Below, piece by piece: positions 32,500 through 60,877 of a stretch of 64,000 bases of DNA. The position numbers and the translations under genes were made by a program. Below the pieces are notes generated by a model, which did no database searches, had not been told where the DNA came from, and worked only from the letters and a program-made list of their open reading frames with translations. The stretch covers positions 1 to 64,000 of IMG/VR virus record IMGVR_UViG_3300044644_001125. The stretch is one strand, 5' to 3'. Numbering within the stretch: position 1 is the first letter of the stretch; each line of letters opens with the position of its first letter.

Positions 32500-32646
32500 A
32501 GCTTTCTCCTTTCTTGTATTTACATTGGCTCGCTCCTAGCGGAGCTCGCAGCATCTATTATAGGTTTTTAGCACATAATCAACAATAAGTCAATTATCTT
32601 TTAGGGTAAATACAACTAATTAAACCACATAAGGAAATAACCAAAG

Positions 32647-34266
32647 ATGGCAAACAGAAACCTAGATGGCGTTCAAATCTTAAGAGCACATCAAAAACAA
32701 CAATACACACTTGAACAAGTACAACACTTAGAGAAATGTATGGATCCAGTTACTGGACCTCTTTACTTCTGCAAAAACTTCTTGAAAATCCAGCATCCAA
32801 CTAGAGGTGCAATCCCATTTGAACCATACGAATATCAAGAAAGATTGATTCAAGCATATAACGATAATACTTATACAATCGCTATGCTACCACGTCAGAT
32901 GGGTAAAGCACTTTGCAACGAAACTCCTGTATTAACACCAAATGGATTCAAACGAATGGGTGATATCCAAGTCGGTGATACTATCTATACACCTAAAGGT
33001 ACACCAACTGAAGTAACTTTCATTACTGAAACGATGACAAATCGTACTTGTTACAATGTTGAATTCTCACACGGTGAAAGTATTATCGCAGATGCACACC
33101 ACCTTTGGACTTGGTTTGACCCAGGCTACAATGACTTGATTACTGAAAATACCGAATACCTGATTAAACGTGTTAATAAGTTTAAAACGTCAAACATTAG
33201 ACTCAGTATGGATTATACAAAACTCATTGAATTCGACAAGAAACCAATGAAACTAGATCCATATCTAATCGGTATTTGGATGGGTAATGACCCAGAAGTA
33301 AATCAAATGAGATGCTATACTCACGAATATACCAGATATAACGAGATGTTTAAATCCCATGGTCTTACTATGTCTGAATTAACACTAAGAAGACACAGTA
33401 AACGATTGGGTATGTACTCAGTTAATAACCTAGAGTTCATGGTAAAACCGGTTCTTAATAAGGATAATACCTTACCAGAAGAGCTCATGCTCAATGATTC
33501 TGAAACTCGTTTACAAATCATTAGAGGTATTATGGATGTATGCGGTAGTGTATCAGATACTGGGTACTGTACTTTTAAACATACCAATGAGAAAATCATG
33601 GAACAAACACGTTTCATGTTGGCTACTCTAGGTGTTAAAACCCATTTGAAAGTCGAAGTCTGTAAGTTTAAAACCAATTACTATCTTAATTTTTCAACTA
33701 AAGACTTAAGACTATTCAATCTGTCTGAGAAAGTTGATAAAGCTGCATTGAGTAATCACTTCCCAAATAATGAAAGAGTTTATATCAAAAGCATTACCAA
33801 AGCAAAATCAGTACCAGTTAGATGTTTACAAGTGGCAGATAGAAAACATCTATTCCTAGTGGGTAAAACTCTAGTACCAACACATAACACTACTTGTGCA
33901 TGTGGATTCTTGCTCTGGTATACCATGTTTGTTCCCGAAGCCCAAGTACTGATTGCTGCTCACAAATACGCCGGTGCACAAGATATTATGAACCGATATC
34001 GATATGGCTACGAGAACTTACCAGACTTTATCCGTGCCGGTGTTTATTCATATAACAGGAATACAATCGAATTTGATAATGGTGCTCGTATCCAAGCAAC
34101 TACCACTACTGAAAATACAGGTCGAGGTAAGTCGCTCTCTTTGATTTATTGCTTAGATGGAGATACTACTGTTCGTATCAGACACAAGGAAACCCTTGTA
34201 GAAGAAGAGATATCACTCGCTGCGTTATATCAACGACTTGACCCAGCGGTACAGGTTATTGCTTAA
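32647..34266 (+). CDS. terL: Terminase large subunit, fragment 1 (N-extein, cis intein, extein, split-intein N-part)
   Basis: gp17-like IQHP.RG.IPF.PYEYQ; Walker A PRQMGK|TT interrupted by an intein; GRGKSLSLIY followed by CLDGDT intein start and a stop codon. Confidence 0.93.
   Translation: MANRNLDGVQILRAHQKQQYTLEQVQHLEKCMDPVTGPLYFCKNFLKIQHPTRGAIPFEPYEYQERLIQAYNDNTYTIAMLPRQMGKALCNETPVLTPNGFKRMGDIQVGDTIYTPKGTPTEVTFITETMTNRTCYNVEFSHGESIIADAHHLWTWFDPGYNDLITENTEYLIKRVNKFKTSNIRLSMDYTKLIEFDKKPMKLDPYLIGIWMGNDPEVNQMRCYTHEYTRYNEMFKSHGLTMSELTLRRHSKRLGMYSVNNLEFMVKPVLNKDNTLPEELMLNDSETRLQIIRGIMDVCGSVSDTGYCTFKHTNEKIMEQTRFMLATLGVKTHLKVEVCKFKTNYYLNFSTKDLRLFNLSEKVDKAALSNHFPNNERVYIKSITKAKSVPVRCLQVADRKHLFLVGKTLVPTHNTTCACGFLLWYTMFVPEAQVLIAAHKYAGAQDIMNRYRYGYENLPDFIRAGVYSYNRNTIEFDNGARIQATTTTENTGRGKSLSLIYCLDGDTTVRIRHKETLVEEEISLAALYQRLDPAVQVIA
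32908..33888 (+). mobile_element. Class-3-type cis intein (327 aa) with degenerate LAGLIDADG domain, in the terminase Walker A
   Basis: Starts with Ala (ALCNETPV), block B HHLW, block F VRCLQV, ends PTHN followed by Thr; LDPYLIGIWMGND and RGIMDVCG endonuclease-like blocks. Confidence 0.85.
34150..34266 (+). mobile_element. Split intein 1, N-fragment (38 aa)
   Basis: CLDGDTTVRIR...EEISLAALY then stop, just before the Walker B acidic residues. Confidence 0.88.
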
Positions 34267-34330
34267 TGGCTCGCTGACGCTCGCACATATAATATGAAAC
34301 TAAAAGACGTAACTATCCATTAATAGAATA

Positions 34331-34683
34331 CTAAAAGATGATTGTCTTATTAGGTATATTATCTTTTAGTTATGATGTTCTTATAGATGATGTTTATATT
34401 TGATCTATTATCTTTTAGTTATGATGTTCTTATAGATGTTTGTATTAATGGTCTTATTGATGTGAGTTATTAGATAATTATCTTTTAGTTCAAAATGTAT
34501 GGGTTCGTATGGAGTTTATAACGTATGTGTGCATCTGGTAAAAAGCTATAATGTATGGGTTCGAATAGATCTAAAATGTATGTGCGCGAATGGAAACAGC
34601 TATAAGGGAATTATCTTTTAGAGTCAAAATGCGTGTGCGCGTGGCTTAAGCAGGTAGGAAGTAATGGATTCATTATCTTTTAG
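34331..34683. repeat. AT-rich repeat array containing ATTATCTTTTAG x5 and longer direct repeats
   Basis: Copies at 34358, 34407, 34477, 34610, 34672; 33-bp direct repeat 34357-34389 and 34406-34438; 14-bp AATGTATGGGTTCG at 34494 and 34550. Confidence 0.85.
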
Positions 34684-34749
34684 AATTATCTTATACGCTC
34701 CTACTATAATAGATTTAAGATAGAATCATTAATAGCTTTAATAATAGAG

Positions 34750-35230
34750 GCTTTTAATACTGCGGTATGTGGAGCGGAACATCTTAACCCGAAAAACTCG
34801 GGTTAATTCAAAGCATTCTCAATTGGGTTTTAAGTAATTGAAAAGTTCTGCGTACAAGTATCGCATCACAGCAGCAGTAGAGCGTTACAGAGGCGGTCAG
34901 CCGGTACCTCGAGCTCAGTCTTATTAATCTGACGGTGGCCACATGAACAACTGCTACCTCATTCATGCGACGTGGACTTTTTAGTCCATCTTTAGCCTTT
35001 GTAAATCTTTTCGCTATAACACAAATGGGTTGTATGAAGGCATATCCCATAACTCATCTGGTGGGGTAGTGTGTTATATCTCCGTTGCTAACTTCGGAAC
35101 TTCCATCCCTTGTGATCAAGTAGTCCAAGGTTTAAGGGCATCATATCAGTCGCCGATGCAGGCTTTCTTAGCAATTCTCTCGTCTTTCTATGTTCTATCT
35201 AGTAATTCGACGAGCAAGGTTTGGCTGGTG
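34750..35230 (-). ncRNA. Candidate large structured non-coding RNA (family unidentified, ends approximate)
   Basis: No credible ORF; more GC-rich than flanks; stems at 34784-34806, 34890-34910, 34973-34988, 35015-35078, 35108-35130, 35179-35214; strong promoters upstream on the minus strand. Confidence 0.55.
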
Positions 35231-35240
35231 CCTAAAAGAT

Positions 35241-35339
35241 AATAGACTTGGTGTCGGTATTGTATATAGTTCAAATAGACTTTGTGTCGGTAGGATTTGG
35301 TCTCTAAAAGATAATTGAGTAATAGACTTGGTGTCGGTA
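35241..35339. repeat. Three copies of a 19-bp repeat AATAGACTT(G/T)GTGTCGGTA
   Basis: Copies at 35241, 35274 and 35321, interleaved with CTAAAAGATAAT at 35232 and 35304. Confidence 0.85.
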
Positions 35340-35386
35340 TGGATTTGAGATGGTCTCGGTAAACTGCTTTTGTGTAAGTATGATTA

Positions 35387-35415
35387 ATTATAACTTAGAT
35401 TATGGGGACTGTCAA
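35387..35415 (-). promoter_or_regulatory. Consensus sigma70 promoter facing the non-coding region
   Basis: Minus strand TTGACA (35415-35410), 17 bp, TATAAT (35392-35387). Confidence 0.9.
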
Positions 35416-35457
35416 CCTATTTTTCAAGGTATCTCGGGTAATTCTTTAGTATAGTTA

Positions 35458-35486
35458 ATTGTAATCTATTTTGATTGGGTTGTCAA
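35458..35486 (-). promoter_or_regulatory. Second tandem sigma70 promoter
   Basis: Minus strand TTGACA (35486-35481), 17 bp, TACAAT (35463-35458). Confidence 0.85.
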
Positions 35487-35489
35487 CTG

Positions 35490-36203
35490 TTATTTTGGAA
35501 GATTATCGAAAAACTCTGTGTATGGGTCGTTTTTGATATTACTGTACTCAACTCGCAATCCTTTTAATTTTTCTTCCTGACCAGCAATTAGATCATCAAA
35601 ATTGCCATTTTGATTATGTTTATGTAATGCTTCTATTGCTGCTTTTATTTGTTCAGCTTGGTTTTTGATGCCTTCTAATTGAGTATTAACTAGTTTATTA
35701 TGATATTCAATTGCTTTGGCTTTGGTCGCTTCCCAGTCATATTCCACTCCATTGGAATTAAGAAACTTTTCTACTTTAGCCTTGCGACCGTATTCGTTCG
35801 CAACTCTCTGCAAATTACCCATTTCATCCCTAGCCAACATCTCATCAATGTTAGCCTGTAGGTCATCAACAAAACGAATCTTAGATTTTATTTTCTCACT
35901 TTGTTGTTTCGGTGCACCTTCAGCCGAACGCTCCCATTGAATAACGGTACCACCTTTATTTGTTGTTTTTTCAACTCTGGTAATACCAATATCGTCTAAG
36001 TAGAAATCAATACGAAATTGATTCTTATACATAGAACCTTGGGTAGAAAAGAACTTTTCACCGTCTAAGTCGTGTGCGTTTGATAGGATGAATTTAGCTT
36101 GTTTCTCTGATTTAAACTTACCATCATTGTAATCTTTTAAACCATATAATGTTTTTGCAATATCACCCTCTGTGGCTTCTGCTAATATGTCTTTTACTTG
36201 CAT
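35490..36203 (-). CDS. Putative internal head protein, coiled-coil C-terminus
   Basis: MQVKDILAEA N-terminus; GAGGA RBS; late-type ATAAATA on the minus strand at 36236-36230. Confidence 0.6.
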   Translation of the reverse strand: MQVKDILAEATEGDIAKTLYGLKDYNDGKFKSEKQAKFILSNAHDLDGEKFFSTQGSMYKNQFRIDFYLDDIGITRVEKTTNKGGTVIQWERSAEGAPKQQSEKIKSKIRFVDDLQANIDEMLARDEMGNLQRVANEYGRKAKVEKFLNSNGVEYDWEATKAKAIEYHNKLVNTQLEGIKNQAEQIKAAIEALHKHNQNGNFDDLIAGQEEKLKGLRVEYSNIKNDPYTEFFDNLPK

Positions 36204-36253
36204 TGAATTTCCTCATTTAACTGATCTTGTATTTATGATGCATCAATTATCTT

Positions 36254-36532
36254 TTAGACATCACGAACAGCAAGCACACTCCATTTACAACTTTTCAAAT
36301 CAGTGCCACGTTCAACAAGATCTGGAAATGGATATAAACTTTTAGCATGTCGATCACCATGCTCTTCACTCGACCAATACCAGTGAATTCCTGTAAATGC
36401 TCTAAACTCCCTAAACTCTGCTTCAGTTGGCAATCTCCAACCAATTCTACCATCTACATTTAATGCAAAACAGTAAAATTTGGCAGTATCCCAGTCCATG
36501 CTTAATTTGGTTTCGTAGAATTCTAGGGTCAT
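36254..36532 (-). CDS. DUF1566/Lcl C-terminal (C-type-lectin-like) domain protein
   Basis: WDTAKFYC..L...GWRLPTEAE, YWSS, VLAVR; start at 36532 by TAATG coupling. Confidence 0.75.
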   Translation of the reverse strand: MTLEFYETKLSMDWDTAKFYCFALNVDGRIGWRLPTEAEFREFRAFTGIHWYWSSEEHGDRHAKSLYPFPDLVERGTDLKSCKWSVLAVRDV

Positions 36533-37131
36533 TAGAGATCTCTTACCGGGTGAATTAAACACGTTTCATCCGGATCATTGCCAATATCATCGGAATGCCA
36601 AAAATAAGCATGCATAAGGTTAAAGTAATAACATTCTTCCGGTGTGGGAAACCGCCAGCCAACCTTACCATCGATATTAAGTGAAAAACAATACATCTGC
36701 GCTTCTTCTAATGATGTAGCTTTGATATACGACTGTGGTGCTAACTCAACTGGTATGTTATAAAATGGTTCTATTGTTCTAACAGCTCTAACATGCAATT
36801 CATAATCATCAAACCCCTCATCGTCTGAATCAGTTAGGAAGTCGTAGGTTTGTATAACAGTAAGCGGTTCTTCTTCTGATTCAACTATTCTATAACTACT
36901 AGACCAATATTCTGGAGTCTCAACCGATCCATCAACATACGCATCGCATAACTTAGTATCTAATCTAACTTCTTGTATGTATTGTTCCCGTATTATGTAC
37001 ATTTCGATGATGGTAGGTAACCTCCAACCTTCTTTATCATCTGCTACAAGATTGTCACAGTATTCAAGGGCATCTTCCCAAGTCGATACAACCTCTGTGC
37101 TTTTTGGTGCTAATTCTAAGTTAAAGTTCAT
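36532..37131 (-). CDS. Tandem DUF1566/Lcl domain protein
   Basis: WEDALEYC...GWRLPT..E...YWSSS...VRAVR followed by a second EEAQMYC...GWRFPT..E domain; ATG at 37131. Confidence 0.75.
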   Translation of the reverse strand: MNFNLELAPKSTEVVSTWEDALEYCDNLVADDKEGWRLPTIIEMYIIREQYIQEVRLDTKLCDAYVDGSVETPEYWSSSYRIVESEEEPLTVIQTYDFLTDSDDEGFDDYELHVRAVRTIEPFYNIPVELAPQSYIKATSLEEAQMYCFSLNIDGKVGWRFPTPEECYYFNLMHAYFWHSDDIGNDPDETCLIHPVRDL

Positions 37132-37164
37132 ATAGATATCAAAATGTAAGTTATTGGTATGGTA

Positions 37165-37193
37165 ACTATACCATATAAGTAGACGTGACGCAA
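37165..37193 (-). promoter_or_regulatory. Sigma70-type promoter for the DUF1566 pair
   Basis: Minus strand TTGCGT (37193-37188), 17 bp, TATAGT (37170-37165). Confidence 0.6.
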
Positions 37194-37264
37194 ACATTAT
37201 CTTTTAGAAATGTTAAATAGAGGTAATAAACTAATTACTTATTAATTTCAAACGGTGAACTATC

Positions 37265-38894
<1,630 letters not shown>

Positions 38895-38936: not shown

Positions 38937-39965
38937 ATGAGCAAGGCAACCTATTTATTATCTCCAATTGACGGAAACACCTACTGCAAAACCAATGGTA
39001 AGTTCACTATACATCTTAGGGAATATGGACTTACCTATCAAGATTATTATGAAACTTATATACTTGGGTATTGTCCAATATGTGCATGCGGGTCTAAAGT
39101 TACGATGAATGTATCGACCCATTTACATCCACGCAGTTGTGGAAAGCCTGTGTGTGTTGGTAAAATCACCAGCGATGTTAAACAGAATTGGACTCCGGAA
39201 CAGAGAGAGCAGGATTCAGCCAATAAGAAAGCCGCAAGTGCTGCAGAGACACCGGAGAAAAAACAACAGCGAAACGATAAACGTAAAGCAACTAACTTAA
39301 AAAATCACGGCGTTGAGTGGTCTACCCAGTCGGAAACAATGAAATCTAAGTCAAAACAGACTAAACTTGTACGACACGGTGATGAAAACTACAATAACAG
39401 CAAGATGATCAGTGCAACCAATCTAGCAAAACCTAGAGAGGAAAAAGACGAGATCAATGAAAAACGACGTCTAACTAATTTAGATATGCATGGTGTCGAA
39501 AACTGCTGTTTGATTCCGGGAAATTCGAGTAAATCGAATAAAGGAAACGCGAAGATTAAAGATTACACATTGCCATCTGGTAAGGTTATTGGAGTTCGTG
39601 GTTACGAACCAAATGCAATGGATACCTTATTAGAATCGTATCAAGAATCTGATATATTGATGCACGATGATTACTCAGAATATCAAATCCAAGTTTTCAG
39701 CTATACCTCGGACAAAGGTAGAATCGCGAAATACTACCCAGACATTTATATCCCTTCGGAAAACCGAATTATTGAGATCAAAAGTCAATGGTGGTGGGAT
39801 GGTAATGGTAAGACTGACGAAAAATATACAACCCGACTTGCGAATAATCTTAGAAAAAGGCAAGCCGTGATTGATGCTGGATATAATTACGAAGTGTGGT
39901 TATTTACTAGCAAGACAAACTATAGAGTACTAAAAGATGATGCAGACTTTCAAACCAAACACTAA
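38937..39965 (+). CDS. Free-standing PD-(D/E)XK-type endonuclease
   Basis: VRGYEP, YYPDIYIPSENRIIEIKS motif; N-terminal Cys motif and K..TNL..HGVE repeats; TTAAATA at 38891-38897. Confidence 0.72.
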   Translation: MSKATYLLSPIDGNTYCKTNGKFTIHLREYGLTYQDYYETYILGYCPICACGSKVTMNVSTHLHPRSCGKPVCVGKITSDVKQNWTPEQREQDSANKKAASAAETPEKKQQRNDKRKATNLKNHGVEWSTQSETMKSKSKQTKLVRHGDENYNNSKMISATNLAKPREEKDEINEKRRLTNLDMHGVENCCLIPGNSSKSNKGNAKIKDYTLPSGKVIGVRGYEPNAMDTLLESYQESDILMHDDYSEYQIQVFSYTSDKGRIAKYYPDIYIPSENRIIEIKSQWWWDGNGKTDEKYTTRLANNLRKRQAVIDAGYNYEVWLFTSKTNYRVLKDDADFQTKH

Positions 39966-40278
39966 GAACTTAAAGGTACTAACACCAGATGGATTCCAAC
40001 CCTTCTCTGGTGTTAGTATGCGTGGAGTTAAACCAATTATTCGATTAACATTCGAAAAAGACGTATGGATAGAATGCACACCTGAGCATAAATTCTACAT
40101 CTCTGAAACTGAACAAAAGTTAGCAAGTGATTTTAGGATTGGTGATACCATATTAAGTTCGGATGGTGATTTGAAGTTAATCACTTCTGAAGATTTGGGT
40201 AGAACTGAACCAGTATACGATTTAATTGAAGTTGCTAACGGTCATCGGTTCTATGCGAATTCACTATTAAGTTCGAAT
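39937..40278 (+). mobile_element. Split intein 2, C-fragment (114 aa)
   Basis: VLTPDGF, block B CTPEHKF, FRIGD, block F VYDLIEV, HRFYANSLLSSN|C. Confidence 0.88.
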
Positions 40279-41040
40279 TGCGAATTCTTAATTGATGATG
40301 AAACGTTAATTAATTCGGTTAAATTGGCAGAACTAAAGGGTGTAGATCCGCTATTGACGATGGGGCAAATGCGTTGGTATAAAGAAATCAATCCATTGTC
40401 AACCTATCTAGTATCACTAGACCCAAGTTTGGGAACAGGCGGTGACTTTGCTGCTATGCAAGTATTTGAAATGCCTAGTATGGAACAAGTGGGTGAATGG
40501 CGACACAATACCACACCTGTTCAAACGCAGATAAGGCATTTGAGGGATATCTTAAAACACATCCATGATAGTGGTATTGAAAAATCTGGGTTTGCTCCAA
40601 CTACATATTACAGTATGGAGAATAATACACTAGGTGAAGCAGCCCTAATCGTTATTGAGAGTATTGGTGAGGAGAACTTTCATGGGTTATTCCTGTCAGA
40701 ACCGATTAAGAAAGGGCATATCAGGAAGTTCCGTAAAGGGTTTAATACCACACATAGAACAAAAGTTACTGCATGTAGTCAGTTTAAAAACTTATTAGAA
40801 ACTGGTAAGATGAAGATTAACTCTAAAGTTCTAGTATCTGAGTTGAAAACTTATATCTCAAGGGGTGTTGGGTTTGGTGCTAAATCAGGTGAGAATGACG
40901 ATTTGATTTCTGCAGTTCTTCTTATTATAAGAATGGCAACTGTATTATCTGATTGGGATCCATCGATATATGATAAGATGTCTGAGAAACTGACTGAAGA
41001 TCAGATGCCATTGCCTATCTTTATTAGTAGTGGATTCTAA
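39937..41040 (+). CDS. terL: Terminase large subunit, fragment 3 (IntC2 plus C-terminal nuclease domain)
   Basis: 114 aa intein C-part ending SSN, then CEFL, LDPSLGTGGDFAA, ENNTLG, GENDDL RNase H-like nuclease motifs. Confidence 0.93.
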   Translation: MMQTFKPNTKNLKVLTPDGFQPFSGVSMRGVKPIIRLTFEKDVWIECTPEHKFYISETEQKLASDFRIGDTILSSDGDLKLITSEDLGRTEPVYDLIEVANGHRFYANSLLSSNCEFLIDDETLINSVKLAELKGVDPLLTMGQMRWYKEINPLSTYLVSLDPSLGTGGDFAAMQVFEMPSMEQVGEWRHNTTPVQTQIRHLRDILKHIHDSGIEKSGFAPTTYYSMENNTLGEAALIVIESIGEENFHGLFLSEPIKKGHIRKFRKGFNTTHRTKVTACSQFKNLLETGKMKINSKVLVSELKTYISRGVGFGAKSGENDDLISAVLLIIRMATVLSDWDPSIYDKMSEKLTEDQMPLPIFISSGF

Positions 41041-41140
41041 AAGATAATCGAACCCAATAAACCCAAGGCTAAAAGATAATTGAAACCCACGTACCATAAG
41101 CTAAAAGATAATTGACCTACCATAAACTATTATCTTTTAG
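41037..41140. repeat. Array of the 12-bp motif: three copies at 32-bp period plus one inverted copy
   Basis: CTAAAAGATAAT at 41037, 41069, 41101; ATTATCTTTTAG at 41129. Confidence 0.9.
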
Positions 41141-43672: not shown

Positions 43673-43734
43673 TTAATTGATGCACCGATTGATGCACCGA
43701 TTGGTTAGACCGGTGCATGCTGGATGCTTATCTT

Positions 43735-44740
43735 TTAGAGCAGTTCTTGAATAGATGCCCAAGAAAGTTGATGCTTGGTCAATATATGAATAATAACATT
43801 ATTATCTTTCATAGCTTGATTGATCTTAGGGATATCTTTAGGTATAATCCAATCGTTCTTTGGATCTAAGTAAATATCTTGATCGGGTAAGTAAAAGTCA
43901 GCAAAATACTTTTTCTTTAATCCATTAAGGACGTAATACATGTAAGGTGGTCTTGTCAACGGAATACCATGATCATCCAAATCTTTGGCAACTCGATACT
44001 CGTAAGAGGATTCTAACCAAACACGACCAGCGAATGGTGAATCATACCAACCATACGCGTGGTTATTTTGATTACCACCGAAGTTTGGATTATTAGTTGC
44101 AGTTCTTGATATAATCGCTCTAGCGCATTTAGTAGAACACGTGGATCTCTCGGTCGTATTGTGAAACCATTTACCACATTCTTTACATTGCGACACCTTA
44201 GAATATGGTGGTTTAGTTGGACGATTATATGAAGATTTTTTAGTTTTGGTGGTATTACTACTTTTTGCAGTACTATCACTTTCTGGCAATCTCACACCCA
44301 TAGCTGTTTTTGCACAAGTATCAGAACAAGTTAACCGTTTTCCAGTCTTAGGAAACCATTTACCGCATACTTTGCACTGCGATACTAGGGTATACGGTCC
44401 TTGTTGAGTAATTGTCCTTTAATGACGAACTCGTTTCAATACCAACCGAGTTTCTAGGAGTACGGAATTTGTTATTAACGGTGGCCGCACAACTAGATGA
44501 GCAGTATTTGTTGAAACTGGTACTAGTTTTCTTACCGCAGCATATGCAGCTTGATAGACTATCAATATGATCTTTTAATTCGGATACGTACATCTCCTTT
44601 TTAGAATAAATACAACAGCACAGTAGTTCAATACGACGATTGGTTGGTTTACCACTGTTTTGGTGCTTACGGAAGATATGATGCTTGAGCATTCTCTTGT
44701 TTGTGTATTGTCTACTGCAGGTTTCACATGTATGAATCAT
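43735..44740 (-). pseudogene. Frameshifted Zn-finger-repeat PD-(D/E)XK (TnsA-like) endonuclease
   Basis: ORFs 44360..44740 and 43735..44301 join by a +1 shift near 44418-44363; repeated CK.CGKWF...TCS..C units; ESSYE...YFADFYLP...YLDPKN. Confidence 0.65.
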
Positions 44741-44793: not shown

Positions 44794-44899
44794 ATATTTA
44801 TGAACGGTTTTCATTATCTTTTAGCTAAATACCTAGTCTAAAAGATGATTTTCTCAAGGTGGTTTTCATTATCTTTTAGATAAATACAATATATGAAGT

Positions 44900-44974: not shown

Positions 44975-45075
44975 GATATAAATCAATGACTTACGACTAA
45001 AAGATAATAGTTCCCTAAAGCTAATCAATAGGTAACCTGTTCGAATCAAACATAAAGCAATACATAAAATAAACC

Positions 45076-48377: not shown

Positions 48378-48836
48378 ATGACCAACTGGTATGACAAGGT
48401 TTCACGGGATATAACGAATGTTCCACACGCAATTACCCATTATCGGTCAGAATTAGGTTCTGCCAAGGTAGACGTTAAGATTTCTGGTAGTATTGAACGT
48501 GCGGCAGCTGCAATGCCAGGGATTGTTGAAACACGTTTTTGCCAGTTACAAGAGATTGAGGCTATATTGGAATACTTGAACATTTGTTTGAAGCAGATGA
48601 AAAGTCAACATTTCCAAAAGTATCTTGAAACATATCAACGTTCTTTGAGTAGTAGAGATTGTGATAGATATGTAGATGGAGAACAAGACGTGGTTGATTT
48701 TGAGATTTTAATCAATGACGTTGCCTTACTCAGAAATCAGTATCTTGGTGTTATCAAAGGATTGGATATTAAGCAATGGCAGTTATCCAATATTGTTAAG
48801 TTAAGAACTGCTGGATTGGATGATGCGTCTATCTAA
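48378..48836 (+). CDS. uvsY: Recombination mediator UvsY
   Basis: QLQEIEAILEYL, F.KYLE.Y.R.LS, YVDGE, RNQYLGVIKGLD.KQWQL; downstream of uvsX. Confidence 0.85.
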   Translation: MTNWYDKVSRDITNVPHAITHYRSELGSAKVDVKISGSIERAAAAMPGIVETRFCQLQEIEAILEYLNICLKQMKSQHFQKYLETYQRSLSSRDCDRYVDGEQDVVDFEILINDVALLRNQYLGVIKGLDIKQWQLSNIVKLRTAGLDDASI

Positions 48837-48874
48837 AAGATAATTGATACACTTTGTATCCACCATTGACACGG

Positions 48875-48899: not shown

Positions 48900-48948
48900 G
48901 TTACCTACAAATTTCAATAAATATAGGAAAAACTACGAGGTTACATCC

Positions 48949-50366: not shown

Positions 50367-51046
50367 TTACAGTATTCATTGGGTATGATCCACGAGAAGC
50401 AATAGCTTATCATGTATGTGCTAATAGTATTATTAGGCATAGTTCAAAGCCAGTTGCATTAGTTCCATTGGCTTTAGATAATCTAAAAGATTATGCAGAA
50501 ACGCACGACGATGGTAGTAATCAATTCATTTATAGTCGATTCTTAGTTCCTAGTTTAATGGATTATGAAGGATGGGCAATCTTTATCGATGGTGATATGT
50601 TACTACGTGAAGATATTGCTAAACTCTGGGAGTTGCGAGATCCGACAAAAGCAGTTCAATGCGTTCATCATAATTATGAAACTAAGATGACTACCAAGTA
50701 CTTGGGTTCAGTTAATCAAAATTATCCACGTAAGAATTGGTCTAGTGTGGTAATGTGGAATTGTGCACATCCAGCCAATGCTGTATTAACCTCTGGTTTA
50801 ATACAAGCCTCCTCTGGTGCATTTTTACATCGTTTTACTTGGTTAACTGATGATTTGATTGGTGAATTGCCAGTTGAATGGAATTGGTTACCTGATGAAT
50901 TTGGTGCTAATCCTGATGCTAAACTTCTACACTATACACTTGGAACGCCTTGTTTCCATGATTTTGCACTAACTCCAATGGCAGACGAATGGCACAGAGA
51001 AAGAATGTTAACAAACTACTCGACTCAAGTAAATGCAATTTCTTAG
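50363..51046 (+). CDS. GT-A fold glycosyltransferase (GT8-like)
   Basis: IFIGYD.RE, FIYSRFLVP, DGDML, RKNWSSV, LP.EWNWL, LLHYT.G.P. Confidence 0.85.
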   Translation: MITVFIGYDPREAIAYHVCANSIIRHSSKPVALVPLALDNLKDYAETHDDGSNQFIYSRFLVPSLMDYEGWAIFIDGDMLLREDIAKLWELRDPTKAVQCVHHNYETKMTTKYLGSVNQNYPRKNWSSVVMWNCAHPANAVLTSGLIQASSGAFLHRFTWLTDDLIGELPVEWNWLPDEFGANPDAKLLHYTLGTPCFHDFALTPMADEWHRERMLTNYSTQVNAIS

Positions 51047-52798: not shown

Positions 52799-53712
52799 AA
52801 GTAGCAATCTATCATAGGTCAGTTCCTAATGCCAAGAACCAAGAGAAAGTTGATTTATTAAATCACTTTGCTACTGGAGTTGCGCGTAATGGTGATGCGG
52901 TTATTAATGTAAATGATTTGATGTATCAATCCACTGATGTTGGTGTTATACAAGGTTGGGTTAGTAATGATATTAAAAGACCTCATTTGAGATTGCGAAA
53001 TACCGTAGTTGAAGAACAAATCAAATCTGGTAAGTATGCGGTTGCAGTTGATAGCAACTTGTTTCTTTATAACGATACTACAAATGCGTTACATTATTTA
53101 AGATATAGTTTTAACGGTATATTTCCAAACACAGGAATCTACTGCGATTCTGTGATAGATCCTACTAGATGGCAGAAGATAAGTAAGAACTTAAACTTAA
53201 GTCTAAAAGATAATAGAACTACCGGTAATCATATCTTAATTTGCATGCAACGGAATGGTGGTTGGAGCATGGGTGGTGCGGATGTTCAAGATTGGGCTAT
53301 TTCTACAATAAATGAATTAAGAAAGTACACCGATAGACCAATTGTTATTAGACCACATCCAGGTGATAAAGCAACGAAGGAGTTGCTTAATTCTACAAAT
53401 GCAACGAATAAGTTGCGTGGTTTGACTATCAGTGGCAATCCAAATCTAAAAGATGATTTAATCAATTGTTGGGCAGTGGTGAATTGCAATTCTAGTCCAG
53501 TAGTTGGTGCTGCTATTGAGGGATTCCCTATCTTCGTTACTGACCCTGATAAAAGTCAATGTAGAGAAGTAGCAAACTTGAGTTTATCTGATATAGAAAA
53601 CCCATTACTACCAGATAGGCAGCAATGGGTTGAAAGACTATCCATGTTTCACTGGAACTTTGATGAGTTAAAGTCTGGTGAATGTTGGGCTCATATGCGT
53701 AGTTTTATTTGA
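52795..53712 (+). CDS. Capsule-polysaccharide-biosynthesis-like transferase
   Basis: GTG start; ILICMQ, IVIRPHPG, VVN.NSSP.V.AAIEG.P, L..FHW. Confidence 0.65.
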   Translation: MKVAIYHRSVPNAKNQEKVDLLNHFATGVARNGDAVINVNDLMYQSTDVGVIQGWVSNDIKRPHLRLRNTVVEEQIKSGKYAVAVDSNLFLYNDTTNALHYLRYSFNGIFPNTGIYCDSVIDPTRWQKISKNLNLSLKDNRTTGNHILICMQRNGGWSMGGADVQDWAISTINELRKYTDRPIVIRPHPGDKATKELLNSTNATNKLRGLTISGNPNLKDDLINCWAVVNCNSSPVVGAAIEGFPIFVTDPDKSQCREVANLSLSDIENPLLPDRQQWVERLSMFHWNFDELKSGECWAHMRSFI

Positions 53713-54924: not shown

Positions 54925-55610
54925 TGGTTTCCTTTGTATAATGATTTGGGGTAAGCTGATCTATAATGATCAACATTACTGTTGTGTAAGGTAACTGCAT
55001 TTGGTTTTCCAATACCAATCCAAAATTCGGCATCGTGCCGGTATGGGTAATTTTCAAAATTAAATTGCGATGCATTACTATCTGCCACTGGTAAAATGAA
55101 ACTTGGTAACTTCTGAATATATTCAGAAGTAGCCCACCAGAAATTACCAGCATAATGAGGGTATTTAGAGTTTTCCATCCAGTTTACACCGACTGTGTCA
55201 AAACCAGCATTCAAGTAAGTTACACACTGTTTCCAACAGTCAACTGTGTAGAATAGCATTAGCTCACGCCAGTCCGTTATATTCGCTGTTTTCTTTGACT
55301 TCAATTTCGATGCACCTTTGTGATGTAAATACAAAACATACGAATCCGATGTGTCGCATATCAATTTTAACTCATTTAGTGTTGGTATTTCGTATTCATA
55401 TGTATTAGTTTCTGGGTATAGAACGAGCGCATTGGGATATTCCTGCATTTTAGTTTCCACCCAGCTGAAATTTGCTTTATCATACTGGCAATATATGAAC
55501 ACTCTTGCGTGGTTGATTAGGTCAGATTCTATCACATGATTTAAAATGTCAATAGCAATGTGTTCAGAACCAGGTATATCTACTAAGTGAATGAATACAT
55601 TAAGTTCCAT
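54921..55610 (-). CDS. Putative glycosyltransferase-like protein
   Basis: VLYLH.KG, GVN, HYAGNFWWATSEYI..LP, R..AEFWIG; located in the sugar island. Confidence 0.5.
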   Translation of the reverse strand: MELNVFIHLVDIPGSEHIAIDILNHVIESDLINHARVFIYCQYDKANFSWVETKMQEYPNALVLYPETNTYEYEIPTLNELKLICDTSDSYVLYLHHKGASKLKSKKTANITDWRELMLFYTVDCWKQCVTYLNAGFDTVGVNWMENSKYPHYAGNFWWATSEYIQKLPSFILPVADSNASQFNFENYPYRHDAEFWIGIGKPNAVTLHNSNVDHYRSAYPKSLYKGNQ

Positions 55611-56445
55611 GTGGTATCCTAAGCAACTCTTCCAATGTGTATAGTTGTTTCATATGCTTTGATGGATTTGATAATACACTGTATTCAATATCCCCGGGTC
55701 GTCTATTACCAACGGATACCTTAAACTCTACAGAATTTACCATTTTAAATGTCTCTACGATTTGGTTTACACTAATTCCGATACCATGGCCTAAGTTTTC
55801 AATTTGATTTGTTGGGTTTTTTATTACTGATATTATTGAGTTGCATATTTCATTGACATGCGTGTAATCCCGAATACATGTACCATCGAATGTATTGTAA
55901 TCGTTTCCAAATATTGTAAAATTACCACTAGTTCTAGCATTCATTAATGAGTAGAATAAACCATCTGGGTTTGTCGGAGTTATACCATCACAGCCGATTA
56001 CGTTGTAAAATCTAAAAATGGTGAATTGTATGTCGTTTTCGATGCAGTGCTGTATTGATATATCTTCGGCCATTTTCTTAGAAAGTCCATATGGACTTTC
56101 TAAGTTATCAGCAGCCCCAGTAGATGCTAGAATATAATGCGATGTTTTTATATGCCGTAATATATTTAATGTACCGGACACGTTTGTTGTGTAGTATGCA
56201 ACTGGATTTATAGTACTTTCGGCCACTGATACCAAGGCGGCTAAATGTATTACGCAATCAAACTCTATACCAATCATATCAGCTTCGCACAAGGTAGTTA
56301 TATCAGCTGCGTAGAATGTATCAACTGGAATAGCTGGTTGATTTCTGTCTAAACCTGATACACTGAAACAACCAGCGGCATTCAGTAATTTGGTTAAATG
56401 TGAACCGATATACCCAGAATTACCGGTTATTAATATGCGTTTCAT
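55600..56445 (-). CDS. NAD-dependent epimerase/dehydratase (UDP-glucose 4-epimerase-like)
   Basis: ILITGNSGYIGSH, VIHLAA..SV.ES, YGLSK, FRFYNV, CIRDY.HV, RRPGD. Confidence 0.9.
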   Translation of the reverse strand: MKRILITGNSGYIGSHLTKLLNAAGCFSVSGLDRNQPAIPVDTFYAADITTLCEADMIGIEFDCVIHLAALVSVAESTINPVAYYTTNVSGTLNILRHIKTSHYILASTGAADNLESPYGLSKKMAEDISIQHCIENDIQFTIFRFYNVIGCDGITPTNPDGLFYSLMNARTSGNFTIFGNDYNTFDGTCIRDYTHVNEICNSIISVIKNPTNQIENLGHGIGISVNQIVETFKMVNSVEFKVSVGNRRPGDIEYSVLSNPSKHMKQLYTLEELLRIPHGT

Positions 56446-57413
56446 GTTGATTTTTTACCAAAGTACGCGTCTAATCCTTCATTTTTATACGAACGACCGC
56501 CACTGATTGATTTGATCGTTTCGTTTTCAAATGCATCTATTTGGCAATTTGGATTCAACCCAACCTGCTGGTATAGTGGTTCGAATCGGTTACCATAAAT
56601 ATTAAACAGTAAGTTAAGAGTCCCACCAATATACAACGCCTGTTTACCCATTTCTGATTTTATGTAGTTTCCAATAAACATGGCATACGAACCGCATGAT
56701 AGAAACGCAATATCAAACTCAATTTCTTTAATTTCAGCAACCATCCGATGGCATTCATCATGCCAATTTACTGTCGTTAGATTTAGATTATCAGCAGAAT
56801 CACCAGCATCATTATACGTGATGTTTGTGTTGTATGTTTTTAGTATAAAATTTGGGAATTTGTAATCGTAAAACAATTCATCTTTTCGGGTGAATTGGTA
56901 CTCAATACTTTTTGAAAACGGGCTTACTATTAGGATAGTTTTATTATCACCCCAGGATTTAAACGATTCCAAGAACGGTTTTACTGGTTGTACGTATTGG
57001 TTCCAGTTGAATAAAACTTTGTTTTCTGATATATATGATATAAATGGCTCGTATCTTTGGTCAAATTCTGATTTACCACGCAGCATGAATTTAAAATGTT
57101 TCTCCTGTTTACCAGCATATCCGATTAAATCGCCATTTGTATAATAGGTAATCATTGATTCCAAAAATAGCCTGAAGCAATCTTTACTATTATTAAAATC
57201 AAAATAGCCGTTTAATTCTTTAACTCTTCTGGTAGCTCTATTATACCAAGCATCGTCATGTATGATTTCGTTGTTGTTAAAATAATCACACACTAATTCA
57301 AAATCAGACCCACCAATTCTACTAATAAACATTGGGTGTGGTCTAGCCATATAGTCGGTAAAATACTTCATGATATCTGTAGTATCGTGCAGTACATTGA
57401 CTTTGTTAATCAT
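56442..57413 (-). CDS. Putative GT-D-fold-like sugar transferase
   Basis: ISRIGGSD, ILIVSPF, FDIAFLSCGSYA, ALYIGG.L.LLF.I.G.R. Confidence 0.5.
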   Translation of the reverse strand: MINKVNVLHDTTDIMKYFTDYMARPHPMFISRIGGSDFELVCDYFNNNEIIHDDAWYNRATRRVKELNGYFDFNNSKDCFRLFLESMITYYTNGDLIGYAGKQEKHFKFMLRGKSEFDQRYEPFISYISENKVLFNWNQYVQPVKPFLESFKSWGDNKTILIVSPFSKSIEYQFTRKDELFYDYKFPNFILKTYNTNITYNDAGDSADNLNLTTVNWHDECHRMVAEIKEIEFDIAFLSCGSYAMFIGNYIKSEMGKQALYIGGTLNLLFNIYGNRFEPLYQQVGLNPNCQIDAFENETIKSISGGRSYKNEGLDAYFGKKST

Positions 57414-58093
57414 TTATGCTCCCAAAAATTGGTTCGTGTCAGGCTTTTCTTGCCGTCTTTCTTTGTTAGGGCAGTACCCATAGTATAATTGTGTATTTGA
57501 ATCTTAACATGGTATTGATTAATCGCATTATCTGCTGGCAGGAATGTATTCGCATATGTTTCAATTAGTTTCTTAGCAGCATGTGGTTTGATAGCATATC
57601 CACAGCAACCGGGCATTGACGAATTCCTGTACTCAGAAGCTGCAGGTTCACTGGTTGGATCTAAAAGATAATTGATATACCGTTCACTTTTCGCTGGATG
57701 TCCCAATGCAACTACAAGTACATCATCCCATTCTACTGGGATAAACTCTCTGGTTAATACAATATCATCTTCCCATATGATAATGGGTTCATCCAACTCA
57801 ACGCATTTCTTCCATAGGTTATAGTGACTGAAGAAACAGCCTTTGACACCAGGTGAACTCATTTTAGAAACTGCTTTGGAATCTACATCATCTGTATCTA
57901 TCGGGCCTTTAATACCAAATGGGTGTAAAGTTCTTCCTTCTTGTTCCATTTGCAATACCGCATCATTACCATAAGTACCTTCGAATAGTTCAACTGTTGC
58001 TCCAAAAGATTCTAAATTATCTTTTAGGTTAGTAGCTGTTTCCAAAGAAGCTGGAATCTTTGATAGATGGATGATATAGTTGTTCATTGCCAA
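57410..58093 (-). CDS. GT25-family glycosyltransferase
   Basis: YIIHL, GCFFSHYNLWKKC, IIWEDD, GYAIKP.AAKKL, LPAD. Confidence 0.85.
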   Translation of the reverse strand: MAMNNYIIHLSKIPASLETATNLKDNLESFGATVELFEGTYGNDAVLQMEQEGRTLHPFGIKGPIDTDDVDSKAVSKMSSPGVKGCFFSHYNLWKKCVELDEPIIIWEDDIVLTREFIPVEWDDVLVVALGHPAKSERYINYLLDPTSEPAASEYRNSSMPGCCGYAIKPHAAKKLIETYANTFLPADNAINQYHVKIQIHNYTMGTALTKKDGKKSLTRTNFWEHK

Positions 58094-58887
58094 TAAGCCT
58101 CGGTTCTTGGAACTTTCAAATCAGATAAATTGCTACGGGCTGCTTGCTTTCTATCACCTTTCAAGTGGTCTAAGTACGCACCCCATTCACTGTTAATCAA
58201 TGGATGACCTTCACCAGCAATCAAATGACTACTCCAATCTAATTCATTCAAGTCAAATAGCTTTCTAACTGCATCGAATACATAACTATCATGCCATTCT
58301 TCTAATGTGAAAATACCATTCTCAGCATCATCATAATAACGTTGGAACTTAGCTAAGAATCGACGAACCTTTTCACTCTTTAAATTCATGGCATATAAGC
58401 CACATTCGGTGTACTTTCCTTTACGACCTAAGAAACAAATGTCTTTATTAGGTGGACATAATCTTTCGATTTCAGCCATCGTAATTGGACTATGGCAAAT
58501 CGTGTCAGCATCCATCCAAATTAACATATCTGCTTTAGAACGACTGGCGCAGTGAAATATACTGTAAACCTTGTGAGCGAAGCGAACTGCATCCCATTTG
58601 AAACCAACCTTTTGTGTTTTATCTGGGTGCTTCTGAGTTGAATCTTCACACCAACCAGTAGCCATTGGAATATCTTTCCACTTGTCTTTAAATGCCATTA
58701 ACTCTGGTACATTTACTAGGTTGAATAAACTGGCATTGTCAACATGTTCAATATTAGGCTTGCAATTCTCTGGGTATAGTTGTAAAGTGACCTCTTTAGG
58801 CCAGTTCTCATTGAATGAATCGATCATTCGTTGAGCATACGTGGTCAAACCTTTTTGATTAAATGTTGTTACTACAGTGACTTTCAT
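58084..58887 (-). CDS. Nucleotide-diphospho-sugar transferase (GT-A fold)
   Basis: VTTFN, WDAVRFAHKVY, IWMDAD, WHDSYVFD, DHLKG. Confidence 0.75.
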   Translation of the reverse strand: MKVTVVTTFNQKGLTTYAQRMIDSFNENWPKEVTLQLYPENCKPNIEHVDNASLFNLVNVPELMAFKDKWKDIPMATGWCEDSTQKHPDKTQKVGFKWDAVRFAHKVYSIFHCASRSKADMLIWMDADTICHSPITMAEIERLCPPNKDICFLGRKGKYTECGLYAMNLKSEKVRRFLAKFQRYYDDAENGIFTLEEWHDSYVFDAVRKLFDLNELDWSSHLIAGEGHPLINSEWGAYLDHLKGDRKQAARSNLSDLKVPRTEAYWQ

Positions 58888-58901
58888 ATTTTCTCTATTC
58901 G

Positions 58902-58917
58902 TTAAATAACTATTTAG
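58902..58917. promoter_or_regulatory. Overlapping divergent late-type promoters
   Basis: TTAAATA on plus (58902-58908) and CTAAATA on minus (58917-58911) between divergent sugar genes. Confidence 0.6.
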
Positions 58918-58928
58918 TGAGGTTTACA

Positions 58929-59753
58929 ATGCGATTTCGGTTATATAGAGAGTTCGGTGCAATGAATAGCGGTCCAGTATTCGATGCGTTTGAACAAGGA
59001 TTACTGGCATTAGGCCATAGCGTAGTAGACGAAGATTCCGATGTTGATGTTATCTGGTCAGTTCTATGGAAAGGCAGAATGGCTCCGAATGCTGGAATAT
59101 ATGAATCAGCTAAAGTTACCAATAAACCAATTGTCATACTAGAAATTGGAAGCCTAATACGTGGAACTACATGGAAAGTTTCGCTGAATCACATGAATGC
59201 GCTAGGGTTCTACGGCCATGAAACTGATTTGGATGAAAACAGACCAGCTAAGTTAGGACTGGCACTAAAAGATAATGCAACCAGAAAACCTGAAATTCTA
59301 CTTGCATTGCAACATCAAGATAGTTTACAATGGCAACATCAAATGCCAACGGTTGACTGGATTGAACAAACCATCGCAGTAATCAGACAATATACCGATA
59401 GAACTGTAGTAGTAAGACCGCATCCTAGGTCAATTATATATGTACCAATTAGAAAAGATGTTCACTGTGAACGTCCAAACCGAGTTACTGGAACTTACGA
59501 TAGCTACGATATAGATTACAATTATCATTGTGTAGTTAACCACAATAGTGGTCCTTCTATACAAGCCGCTATTCATGGAACACCTGTTATTTGTGATAGT
59601 ACTAGTCTGGCATACCCAGTAAGTTCACCGATGAAAACAGTACACAACCCAGTATTACCCGATAGAGAAGATTGGTTTTTAAAATTAACACATACGGAAT
59701 GGACTTTAGATGAAATTACCACTGGCCTACCTTTAAAAAGACTACTTATATGA
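58929..59753 (+). CDS. Capsule-polysaccharide-biosynthesis-like transferase
   Basis: ILL.LQH..SLQW, VVVRPHPR, VVNHNSGP.IQAAI.G.P, L...EW. Confidence 0.62.
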   Translation: MRFRLYREFGAMNSGPVFDAFEQGLLALGHSVVDEDSDVDVIWSVLWKGRMAPNAGIYESAKVTNKPIVILEIGSLIRGTTWKVSLNHMNALGFYGHETDLDENRPAKLGLALKDNATRKPEILLALQHQDSLQWQHQMPTVDWIEQTIAVIRQYTDRTVVVRPHPRSIIYVPIRKDVHCERPNRVTGTYDSYDIDYNYHCVVNHNSGPSIQAAIHGTPVICDSTSLAYPVSSPMKTVHNPVLPDREDWFLKLTHTEWTLDEITTGLPLKRLLI

Positions 59754-60877
59754 TACCTTATATTGAAGACGTATACCCATTATTCTACGGATTAGTTGAG
59801 AAATTTGATCCATCAGTTGCAACCGCAGCTAAACAATTTAAAACAATGTGTCAGGATGGTAAACAATTCACCGACAAACAAGCCGGTTATTTGTTATCCA
59901 TAATGTCTAGTCACAAACATCAAGTACCAGTTGACTTATCTCCGGTACTTGACAACCCTAGTTGGAAATTATCTTTTAGACAAATAGATACCGGTAAACG
60001 GGTCTGGATTACAGATAATCGAGTACATATACAATTTCCGTTTAGTATCAAAGCCAACTTCGAATCTGAATTTGATGATGAATCTACTAGTTGGAATTCC
60101 GAGTTACGATATCGCACAGGTAGTCTATTTGATATTAATGTCATACAGTTATACGATTTTGCATTAAGACATGGTTTTGAAATAGACCCGTCATTTGAAA
60201 CTATTGCGTTTGAAACCGAAGATTGCCTAGCTGAAGAAAAGCAAGCATCTCCGCATAGTGTGGTTATCGATAAGCAAGTATATTTGGTTAACTCAACCGA
60301 AGAAACCGATACTTGGTTTGATTCACATAAAACCGGTAATCGACTTCAAGACCTATTCTTAGCAAAACACATGGGATATTTGTATGCTGGTAGACCAAGA
60401 AACTTAGTAGAACGCATCGCTTCATTACCTGAAAATGCTTTTTGGTTAACAGATATCGATAGATTCTTGGTACTTTGCCACCATATACAAGGTAAAGTGT
60501 GTATTGTACTAGATAGAGCAAGCAACAATTATTATTGGTTACAAGATTTCATCGAAGAAGTTAAACGCTCACCTATTTCAATGGACGAGGTTAAGTATGG
60601 GTCTGCGGTAAAAGGTAACAATCCACTCAATGATATAGTCATTGAATATGGGTTGAATAAGAATGTACGTTCTGGAAAAATCATAATAAGTATCTACAGA
60701 CCGAATAATTGGTTGATAGATCAATCAGAAAATGTTATGATGCTAGTTACAAACAACATATACCCGTCAACAAATGTAGTAACCAGAGAATGGCTAGATT
60801 CGCATCCTTGTGTTATTCATTTAAGCGAATATAAACCAACAATCCACCACTGGAGTAAGAACCTTGTCAAACTGTAA
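59750..60877 (+). CDS. Hypothetical protein upstream of uvsW
   Basis: 375 aa ORF coupled by overlaps to both neighbours. Confidence 0.6.
   Translation: MIPYIEDVYPLFYGLVEKFDPSVATAAKQFKTMCQDGKQFTDKQAGYLLSIMSSHKHQVPVDLSPVLDNPSWKLSFRQIDTGKRVWITDNRVHIQFPFSIKANFESEFDDESTSWNSELRYRTGSLFDINVIQLYDFALRHGFEIDPSFETIAFETEDCLAEEKQASPHSVVIDKQVYLVNSTEETDTWFDSHKTGNRLQDLFLAKHMGYLYAGRPRNLVERIASLPENAFWLTDIDRFLVLCHHIQGKVCIVLDRASNNYYWLQDFIEEVKRSPISMDEVKYGSAVKGNNPLNDIVIEYGLNKNVRSGKIIISIYRPNNWLIDQSENVMMLVTNNIYPSTNVVTREWLDSHPCVIHLSEYKPTIHHWSKNLVKL

Follow-up and report, generated by a model that had tools for sequence, protein, structure and literature searches.

A 12-base word, ATTATCTTTTAG, recurs 23 times in exact form, 13 times on the + strand and 10 times on the - strand, within bases 1-64,000 of IMGVR_UViG_3300044644_001125, a 327,256-bp contig; we refer to this 64-kb stretch as the window. 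We find that the word is real, is under selection as a whole, and is a lineage-specific cis-element. We suggest that it is an operator-type cis-regulatory box for one sequence-specific DNA-binding transcription factor, a reading to which we give about an even chance of being right. The source is an uncultivated freshwater jumbo myovirus and, judged by its proteins, distant kin of PA5oct, CBB and RaK2. Hereafter, F denotes ATTATCTTTTAG read along transcription and R its complement, CTAAAAGATAAT.

An earlier note on this DNA had listed the 23 exact copies, and an exact search recovered all of them. It had also judged that well under one copy would be expected by chance, and our null models bear this out: dinucleotide-preserving shuffles give 0.03 copies in the window, and Markov models (orders 1-5, some of them trained solely on the motif-free first 32 kb) predict 0.02-0.24. 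The observed 23 copies thus reject composition as an explanation. As had been reported for the first 32.5 kb, no exact copy precedes position 32,593. A one-mismatch search of the window adds nine copies; seven had been listed and are real, with the one placed at 44839 belonging at 44838, and two in the first 32 kb, at 4330 and 4920, had been missed. Confinement of the word to 32.6-60 kb holds for the window but not for the genome, since at least 13 further stretches of the contig outside the window carry it. Our coverage of the genome comes to 177 of 327 kb, assembled from retrieved loci (cited below by L number), and this sample, which the retrieval enriches for copies, contains 112 exact copies. 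The apparent regionality comes from the division of the DNA into a late structural module and early/middle modules. Window positions 1-32,500 are filled by structural genes (tail sheath, sheath stabiliser, fibre-like proteins and others), and terminase, gp32-like, UvsX-like, helicase and glycosyltransferase genes lie beyond 32,500, according to PHROG and Pfam scans. This late structural module (1-32.5 kb) is without exact copies, as is the tail-fibre block of L027. In a position matrix, conservation ends abruptly at the 12 bases, with a weak preference for T-C-A at positions -3 to -1; the word spans about 15 bp if this weakly conserved 5' TCA is counted.

Of the 78 copies, in the first 131 kb of DNA examined, that were classified as intergenic or coding, 68 are intergenic, in DNA that is 85% coding. 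At orthologous positions in relatives, the window word is intact in 41 of 50 comparisons. In the remaining nine the entire copy is missing or replaced (at most 7 of 12 matches), and copies with 10-11 of 12 matches were never seen in this set. The 30-nucleotide (nt) flanks in the same 50 comparisons are 80% identical on average, and the flanks around most copies are not conserved. All-or-none conservation amid 80%-identical flanks argues that selection acts on the word itself.

Five copies in the window fall in coding sequence, as had been noticed: those at 53203, 58016 and 59265 are read in the LKDN frame, and those at 57661 and 59968 in other frames. CTAAAAGATAAT has stops in two of its three frames, so LKDN is the only peptide possible for an intragenic copy in that orientation. 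LKDN occurs four times in window proteins against 0.33 expected, and three of these four peptides use the exact codons of the motif, a combination with a codon-usage probability of 0.043 each. When the family-25 glycosyltransferase is aligned with eight homologues, the word is seen to replace variable residues without an insertion. A protein motif as the origin of the intragenic copies is ruled out by the codon analysis and this alignment, on which grounds we treat these copies as DNA-level features.

The two orientations follow a simple grammar. Spacers between co-directional genes contain 23 F and 20 R, with no overall orientation bias relative to transcription, which argues against a simple promoter or RNA signal. 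R is placed at the end of the upstream unit and overlaps its stop codon in eight cases, frequently followed by TGA to give stops in all three frames; the earlier remark that copies supply stop codons is correct for three window copies (36246, 41037 and 48833), each of which provides a TAA. F is placed 8-42 nt before the next start codon. Where both are present, R comes first: R-N10-40-F was detected at 18 loci of the clade, which include eight distinct places in the source genome, and the mirror pattern, F-N10-40-R, had zero matches in all of IMG/VR. Tandem copies cluster at a spacing of 32-35 nt, with no periodicity. Some units are bracketed by inward-pointing copies. A threonine transfer RNA (tRNA-Thr) gene lies between F (44868) and R (44997), and a 1.15-kb non-coding RNA (ncRNA) element has five inward-pointing copies at one border and two at the other.

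The earlier note had copies abutting promoters, and we find them locked to promoters at single-base registers. R..F pairs bracket the -35 hexamer of near-consensus sigma-70-type promoters. Counted over distinct promoter-like sites in the clade and the source genome, the gap between the end of R and TTGACA is exactly 2 nt in eight of eight cases, and F lies within the promoter spacer in 12. Nine of these 12 read TTGACA-N8-ATTATCTTT-TAGAAT or -TAGACT, such that the last three bases of F (TAG) form the first half of the -10; in the other three, the -10 hexamer (TATAAT, TACAAT or TATAGT) comes 1-2 nt after F. Class-A cassettes have R at -49 to -38 and F at -21 to -10, with -25 to -14 as an alternative register for F. 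Of 122 distinct F contexts, 29 have a -10-like hexamer that begins 1-3 nt past the word, where about 10 would be expected. The R at -49 to -38 is similar to an A-rich UP element, and in sister cassettes it alternates with A-tracts. A comparison of the word by eye with the consensus DnaA box, IHF site and UP element gave partial resemblance at best.

About 40 near-consensus sigma-70-type early cassettes (TTGACA-N17-TAnnnT) were found in L108, L110 and L114 (for example, L114:4880-4960 and L110:1860-1940). Each has an inverted repeat around the -10, belonging to one of three or four arm families such as GGGTAC/GTACCC, and a conserved leader, ACCCACCTTAACAAAGCACTACGGAG, precedes a small open reading frame (ORF). 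F, R or a one-mismatch version is present in about half of them. A candidate late promoter similar to the T4 late TATAAATA, (g)CTAAATAc, stands ahead of structural genes in the window and is not accompanied by the 12-mer there. Outside the structural block, F adjoins late-type motifs before terminase piece 1 and before the tRNA, and the F+CTAAATA composite also precedes tRNAs in the diverged relative L028. F also follows consensus promoters ahead of the ncRNA and, at 8-9 nt from the ATG, ahead of DUF1566-type genes, and in L027 a one-mismatch R followed by F, F and F stands at the border between the tail-fibre block and the MazG/clamp-loader genes.

The ncRNA element (window 34290-35490) holds a match to the Rfam Polynucleobacter-1 RNA (RF01718, 68-80 bits) and occurs at least four times in the source genome, plus relatives. 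Two near-consensus sigma-70-type promoters lie upstream of the ncRNA. Some 450-500 nt of the element are highly conserved, changes at paired positions look compensatory by eye, and the sequence suggests a larger structured RNA. Polynucleobacter-1 is an orphan RNA family with earlier reports from Burkholderiales and fresh water. By a tally of position lists, about 25-30% of the 112 copies lie in these elements, of which there are at least four (seven copies in the window, about 10 in L003, six in L007 and five in L018).

Presence of the word is restricted to the source phage and its close relatives. An IMG/VR scan for tandem pairs returned 29 stretches, 28 of which are the source contig or close relatives (74-97% nucleotide identity); the 29th, from a giant-virus metagenome-assembled genome (MAG; L011), is unrelated and consists of a simple 13-nt tandem repeat. 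Loci from sister clades of the same phage family, around the glycosyltransferase homologue and around terminase, have zero copies and no other abundant 11- or 12-mer, and a search for a variant word found no 11-mer with more than four copies in the 20-kb sister-clade loci around terminase genes. We conclude from this distribution that the word is specific to one narrow lineage. The tandem-pair scan of 185,579 bacterial and archaeal genomes (one per species) gave 12 matches, all unrelated tandem repeats or chance; none resembles the phage, and they thus give no clue to the host. A literature search for the word or its complement returned only chance matches in unrelated papers. As a separate observation, a Methanosarcinaceae MAG (L105, CAVRNH010000006.1) has 20 exact copies of the 12-mer in an 8-kb part of an archaeal contig; they presumably form a tandem or CRISPR-like repeat and show no sequence relation to the phage.

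Both orientations, single-base registers at polymerase sites, all-or-none conservation and avoidance of late operons are what would be expected of a transcription-factor binding site. The earlier note had proposed a protein-binding or recombination signal; as far as sequence can tell, protein binding is the best-supported reading, and recombination finds little backing. We infer that a protein binds the word. Given the asymmetry of the word, binding by a monomer, or by monomers in pairs, is probable; given its restriction to one narrow lineage, the phage itself probably encodes the putative factor. The box would be built into non-structural transcription units at fixed places: in near-consensus sigma-70-type early promoters, R just upstream of the -35 and F in the spacer, overlapping the -10; at late-type CTAAATA promoters, F immediately before the motif; F between promoter and start codon; and arrays of 3-7 copies at the borders of strongly transcribed units (ncRNA element, tRNA, terminase gene, replication operon). 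Such a factor, sitting at these positions, would occlude or block the host RNA polymerase, on which RaK2/PA5oct-type jumbo phages rely according to one report (PMC7318152). If so, its likeliest role would be the timed shut-off or insulation of early units, and because class-A promoters are already near-consensus at -35 and -10, a negative role is the more natural guess.

Several points weigh against an operator-type box. Family searches on the genes beside the densest site clusters gave no convincing cognate DNA-binding protein; Pfam, PHROGs and the ESM Atlas gave nothing usable as a regulator for about 35 small or neighbouring proteins, and a 66-aa basic protein (L114:6166-6366) had sub-threshold matches only. 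About half of the early cassettes are without the word. These cassettes are paralogous, so the fixed registers may partly be explained by common descent. Helical phasing of the tandem copies is not clear, the complementarity of F and R makes an RNA-level reading possible, and the regulation could be activation as well as repression.

F could instead be a phage-specific middle-type promoter element, used by the host RNA polymerase with a phage sigma factor or activator and with a start just downstream, analogous to T4 MotA boxes or -10-only late promoters. This would agree with the fixed orientation and register of F relative to -10-like hexamers, with its position 20 nt before the tRNA and directly before the conserved ncRNA, with its presence before genes that have no visible sigma-70 promoter, such as the MazG/clamp-loader operon, and with the lack of the word in the late module. 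We nevertheless think it unlikely: about half of the copies (R) face backwards, into the 3' end of the unit before them, some in arrays of 3-5, several F end only 8-9 nt before an ATG and behind a consensus sigma-70 promoter, the -35 of class-A promoters is already perfect and their -10 good, and no phage sigma or MotA-like gene was seen in the 177 kb covered. Alternatively, the word could act in RNA, with 5'-F...R-3' brackets or R-N16-F hairpins guiding processing, stability or translation, or with the ncRNA arrays pairing with F and R sites in mRNA like a small-RNA seed. The inward bracketing of the tRNA and of the ncRNA (5 + 2 copies) fits such a role, as do the share of copies within ncRNA elements, which carry arrays of both F and R, the exact conservation over 12 nt and then none, as in a seed, and the position of F 8-10 nt before start codons, where, by eye, its terminal AG enters a purine-rich stretch resembling a ribosome-binding site. 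However, both R and F of class-A cassettes lie upstream of the start site of their own promoter, and complementarity around the tRNA, by inspection, never extends beyond 12 nt. A hairpin predicts F..R as readily as R..F, yet F..R was never found, and the stem would be AU-rich with no U-tract following. We consider a role in RNA rather improbable.

It could also be that the word has no function itself and is the best-conserved piece of multiplied cassettes (PeSL-like early promoters, the ncRNA element and DUF1566 gene arrays) homogenised by recombination or gene conversion, serving at most as a substrate for shuffling. Many copies are in plainly repeated units, and the word is limited to one narrow clade while sister clades of the family have none. 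The synteny-break check proposed in the earlier note points weakly the same way, in that, of about 19 distinct breakpoints, 3 fall no more than 30 nt from a copy where 0.75-1 would be expected, but one of the three (41164) is explained by a 1.5-kb intron-like insertion in relatives. Homogenised cassettes do not readily account for the unconserved flanks of most copies, for all-or-none conservation amid 80%-identical flanks, or for unrelated contexts that include the five intragenic copies, which arose without insertion and against codon preference, and twelve bases are too short for homologous recombination; we doubt that this is the explanation. A regional, chromosome-level signal like matS, parS or Chi, or one for site-specific nicking or packaging, appears very improbable. 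Strong over-representation and a 32-kb block without the word would suit it, as would the intragenic copies, which hold the density at or above about 1 per 4.5 kb in the gene-dense glycosyltransferase cluster. It is opposed by the lack of strand polarity, the ties to promoters and gene ends at base-pair resolution and the scatter of copies over many parts of the 327-kb genome, and no partition or nicking gene was seen beside the clusters.

In an idea that we hold only speculatively, and regard as unlikely to be correct, a lytic jumbo phage would insulate or silence its transcription units genome-wide and use the word as their address label, with every early or middle unit bracketed by inward-facing copies. 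One version could involve a polar roadblock protein, a stoperator-like mechanism outside temperate mycobacteriophages. In another, the copies could be read via base-pairing by the multi-copy Polynucleobacter-1-type ncRNA elements with their arrays of the word, which, if true, would give this orphan family a function. The positions of the copies and of other features are collected in the table.

Table. Copies of the 12-base word and associated features. Coordinates without an L number are window positions; "left-hand array" refers to the 1.15-kb ncRNA element.
Feature	Coordinates	Strand	Context
F	32593..32604	+	42 nt before ATG of terminase piece 1; late-type TAAATA begins 2 nt after; intact in L005, L008, L012
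F	34358..34369	+	left-hand array; points to RNA 3' end
F	34407..34418	+	left-hand array
F	34477..34488	+	left-hand array; intact in 10/10 aligned copies and relatives
F	34610..34621	+	left-hand array
F	34672..34683	+	left-hand array; nearest to hairpin 34785-34807
F relative to ncRNA	35232..35243	-	conserved structured RNA starts directly after
F	35304..35315	-	about 65 nt downstream of 12/12 sigma-70-type promoter 35415-35387; upstream of ncRNA
R relative to minus-strand genes	36246..36257	+	gives TAA stop of ORF 36254-36562; ATAAATA 9 nt on; ATG at 36203 42 nt on
Copy in divergent spacer	37196..37207	+	57 nt before ATG at 37265; TAAATA 6 nt downstream
R	41037..41048	-	gives TAA stop of terminase piece 3
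R	41069..41080	-	32 nt after 41037 copy
R	41101..41112	-	32 nt past 41069 copy; R-N16-F pair with 41129 copy
F	41129..41140	+	21 nt before ATG at 41162; c+TATAAC next
F	44813..44824	+	abuts CTAAATA directly
F	44868..44879	+	abuts ATAAATA; 20 nt before tRNA-Thr (44900-44974)
R	44997..45008	-	22 nt after tRNA-Thr; brackets tRNA together with 44868 copy
R	48833..48844	-	gives TAA stop of ORF 48378-48836; intact in L019, L028 and, in one of two comparisons, L006, though L019/L028 flanks only 58% identical
Intragenic	53203..53214	-	codons LKDN of ORF 52795-53712; 10/12 in L028
Intragenic, sense	57661..57672	-	family-25 glycosyltransferase ORF 57410-58093 (-)
Intragenic	58016..58027	+	codons LKDN, family-25 glycosyltransferase ORF 57410-58093 (-); no insertion relative to homologues
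Intragenic	59265..59276	-	codons LKDN of ORF 58917-59753
Intragenic, sense	59968..59979	+	ORF 59750-60877
One-mismatch, ATCATCTTTTAG	34331..34342	-	R partner of 34358 copy, 15-nt gap
One-mismatch	44838..44849	-	between two F copies upstream of tRNA
One-mismatch, LKDD	39930..39941	-	junction of homing-endonuclease ORF and terminase piece 3; includes ATG at 39937
One-mismatch	38271..38282	+	within terminase piece 2
One-mismatch	43727..43738	+	3' end of ORF 43735-44301 (-); kept in L006, L010, L020
One-mismatch, intragenic, LKDY	50483..50494	-	
One-mismatch, intragenic, LKDD	53446..53457	-	
One-mismatch	4330..4341	-	upstream of sigma-70-type promoter 4366; heads HNH-endonuclease cassette
One-mismatch, CTTATCTTTTAG	4920..4931	-	within homing/HNH-endonuclease ORF 4887-6446
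Polynucleobacter-1 match	35014-35164	-	Rfam
Further Polynucleobacter-1 elements	L003:1362-1512, L007:6379-6529, L018:2226-2376		also L009, L013, L015
Candidate late promoter (g)CTAAATAc	1972, 8217, 15150, 22710, 24379, 31018, 41571	+	
Candidate late promoter (g)CTAAATAc	22697, 58917	-	
1.5-kb insertion in relatives	L008:7666-9175, L006:671-2179, L020		orthologous to window 41164
DUF1566/Lcl_C arrays	L022:3348-6046, L007:3946-6072, L024:6128-10141; window 36532-37197		

PHROG and Pfam scans of its proteins show the window to be from a tailed phage. With 14 kb as the query, megablast gave no nucleotide match to isolate phages. The terminase protein is 36-38% identical to those of RaK2-like phages, and the tail sheath protein has 46% identity to that of PA5oct and 34% to that of CBB. 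A sugar-nucleotide and glycosyltransferase cluster (window 48844-60877; cytidylyltransferase/cupin, GT8-like and GT25 genes) is common to many freshwater phage contigs at 62-73% identity. An HNH/homing-endonuclease gene (4887-6446) and a 152-aa ORF form a cassette within the structural module (window 4330-6446), behind the sole strong intergenic sigma-70-type promoter of that module (4366), and further HNH genes were seen at window 43735-44301, L007:108-1271 and L022:139-1617.

The large terminase gene is split into three ORFs (32647-34266, 38160-38894 and 39937-41040) with gaps of 3.9 kb and 1.0 kb. Pieces 2 and 3 start with a C-intein half of about 115 aa (PDB 6DSL_B 'CatC', E 6e-7 and 2e-11) that also matches gp41-1 and VidaL, from which we predict two atypical split inteins; a DUF7487/homing-endonuclease ORF (38937-39965) lies between the two pieces. 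The 1.5-kb insertion in relatives encodes a 423-aa ORF and falls directly after the ATG of the gene starting at window 41162. It has a G+C-rich, structured-looking start and may be an intron. The DUF1566/Lcl_C-type arrays consist of small paralogous genes (GWRLPT...PVRDLKDD). Neighbouring genes meet at CTAAAAGATGATTGA, a one-mismatch form of the 12-mer that holds the C-terminal codons and stop of the first gene as well as the ATG of the second; a dozen junctions are identical here at the nucleotide level.

Transcription control in RaK2/PA5oct-type jumbo phages is poorly known, and one 12-base word at more than 100 promoter and boundary positions offers a handle on the timing and separation of early, middle and late units. 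The word could be used as bait for the putative regulator, and, as it is lineage-specific, the sister clades are the natural comparison for the cognate gene. The loci that bear it also connect the orphan Rfam family Polynucleobacter-1 with a phage.

The nearest known system is that of the stoperators of Cluster A mycobacteriophages (L5 gp71, TipsytheTRex; PMC9283540, PMC6550527). A stoperator is an asymmetric 13-bp site found at more than 20 places, in promoters and short intergenic spaces, and bound by a monomeric repressor with two DNA-binding domains; its one orientation correlates with transcription, and function is lost on reversal (PMC9283540). The word is likewise short and asymmetric (12-15 bp), has more than 20 near-exact copies in promoter and intergenic positions, and loses conservation where the word ends. 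In contrast to stoperators, its two orientations are equally common and follow the R..F order. Stoperator phages are temperate siphoviruses whose protein is the immunity repressor, whereas the phage studied here is a jumbo myovirus whose covered DNA shows no sign of lysogeny. About 50 of its proteins, from 177 of 327 kb, were scanned with Pfam and PHROG, with no match to a gp71-type repressor (helix-turn-helix plus stoperator domain). Given that the single orientation is absent, we do not file the word as a member of the stoperator system.

The T4 MotA box, 9 bp long and used in one orientation, takes the place of the -35, with its centre near -30 and a sigma-70 -10 some 11-13 bp downstream. 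Similarity to T4 MotA/middle promoters and to the middle-promoter stem-loops (PmSLs) of phage nt-1 (PMC4122927) lies in a phage word at a fixed register relative to a sigma-70-type -10; that paper gives a TGCTT Mot box with a -10-like box at an appropriate distance behind it. The likeness to the MotA system extends to a T4-related phage and to a word upstream of replication genes and tRNAs. Unlike the MotA box, the 12-bp word overlaps the -10 or stops 0-3 nt short of it, TTGACA is kept, and an inverted copy lies upstream at -49 to -38; the proteins scanned from 177 of 327 kb included no MotA or AsiA homologue. The PeSLs (promoter-early stem-loops) of T4-type phages are composite stem-loop and early-promoter cassettes thought to act through recombination (PMC2839356, PMC4122927). 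They recur ahead of small genes in plastic regions, where they bound the insertions, deletions and replacements that separate close relatives. The early cassettes themselves, rather than the 12-mer as such, are PeSL-like, being repeated and having an inverted repeat, a near-consensus sigma-70 promoter and small genes. The 12-mer differs in being a sub-element that is also found beside late-type promoters, at stops, within genes and in ncRNA elements.

The P1 C1 operators are asymmetric 17-bp sites, dispersed at more than 12 places in a large phage genome, some of them single and some in inverted pairs over promoters. Unlike the system described here, P1 is temperate and its sequence and protein are unrelated, and no C1-like gene was seen in the DNA covered. 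With matS, parS and Chi, to which the earlier note had likened it, the word shares only that it is short and over-represented in a large replicon. Those elements are defined by a chromosomal domain or by replication strand polarity; the 12-mer has no domain and no polarity, and its positions track promoter geometry, so the comparison does not stand. Operator boxes as a kind are thus already known, and what is new here is the two-orientation grammar of a promoter-linked, putatively operator-type box.

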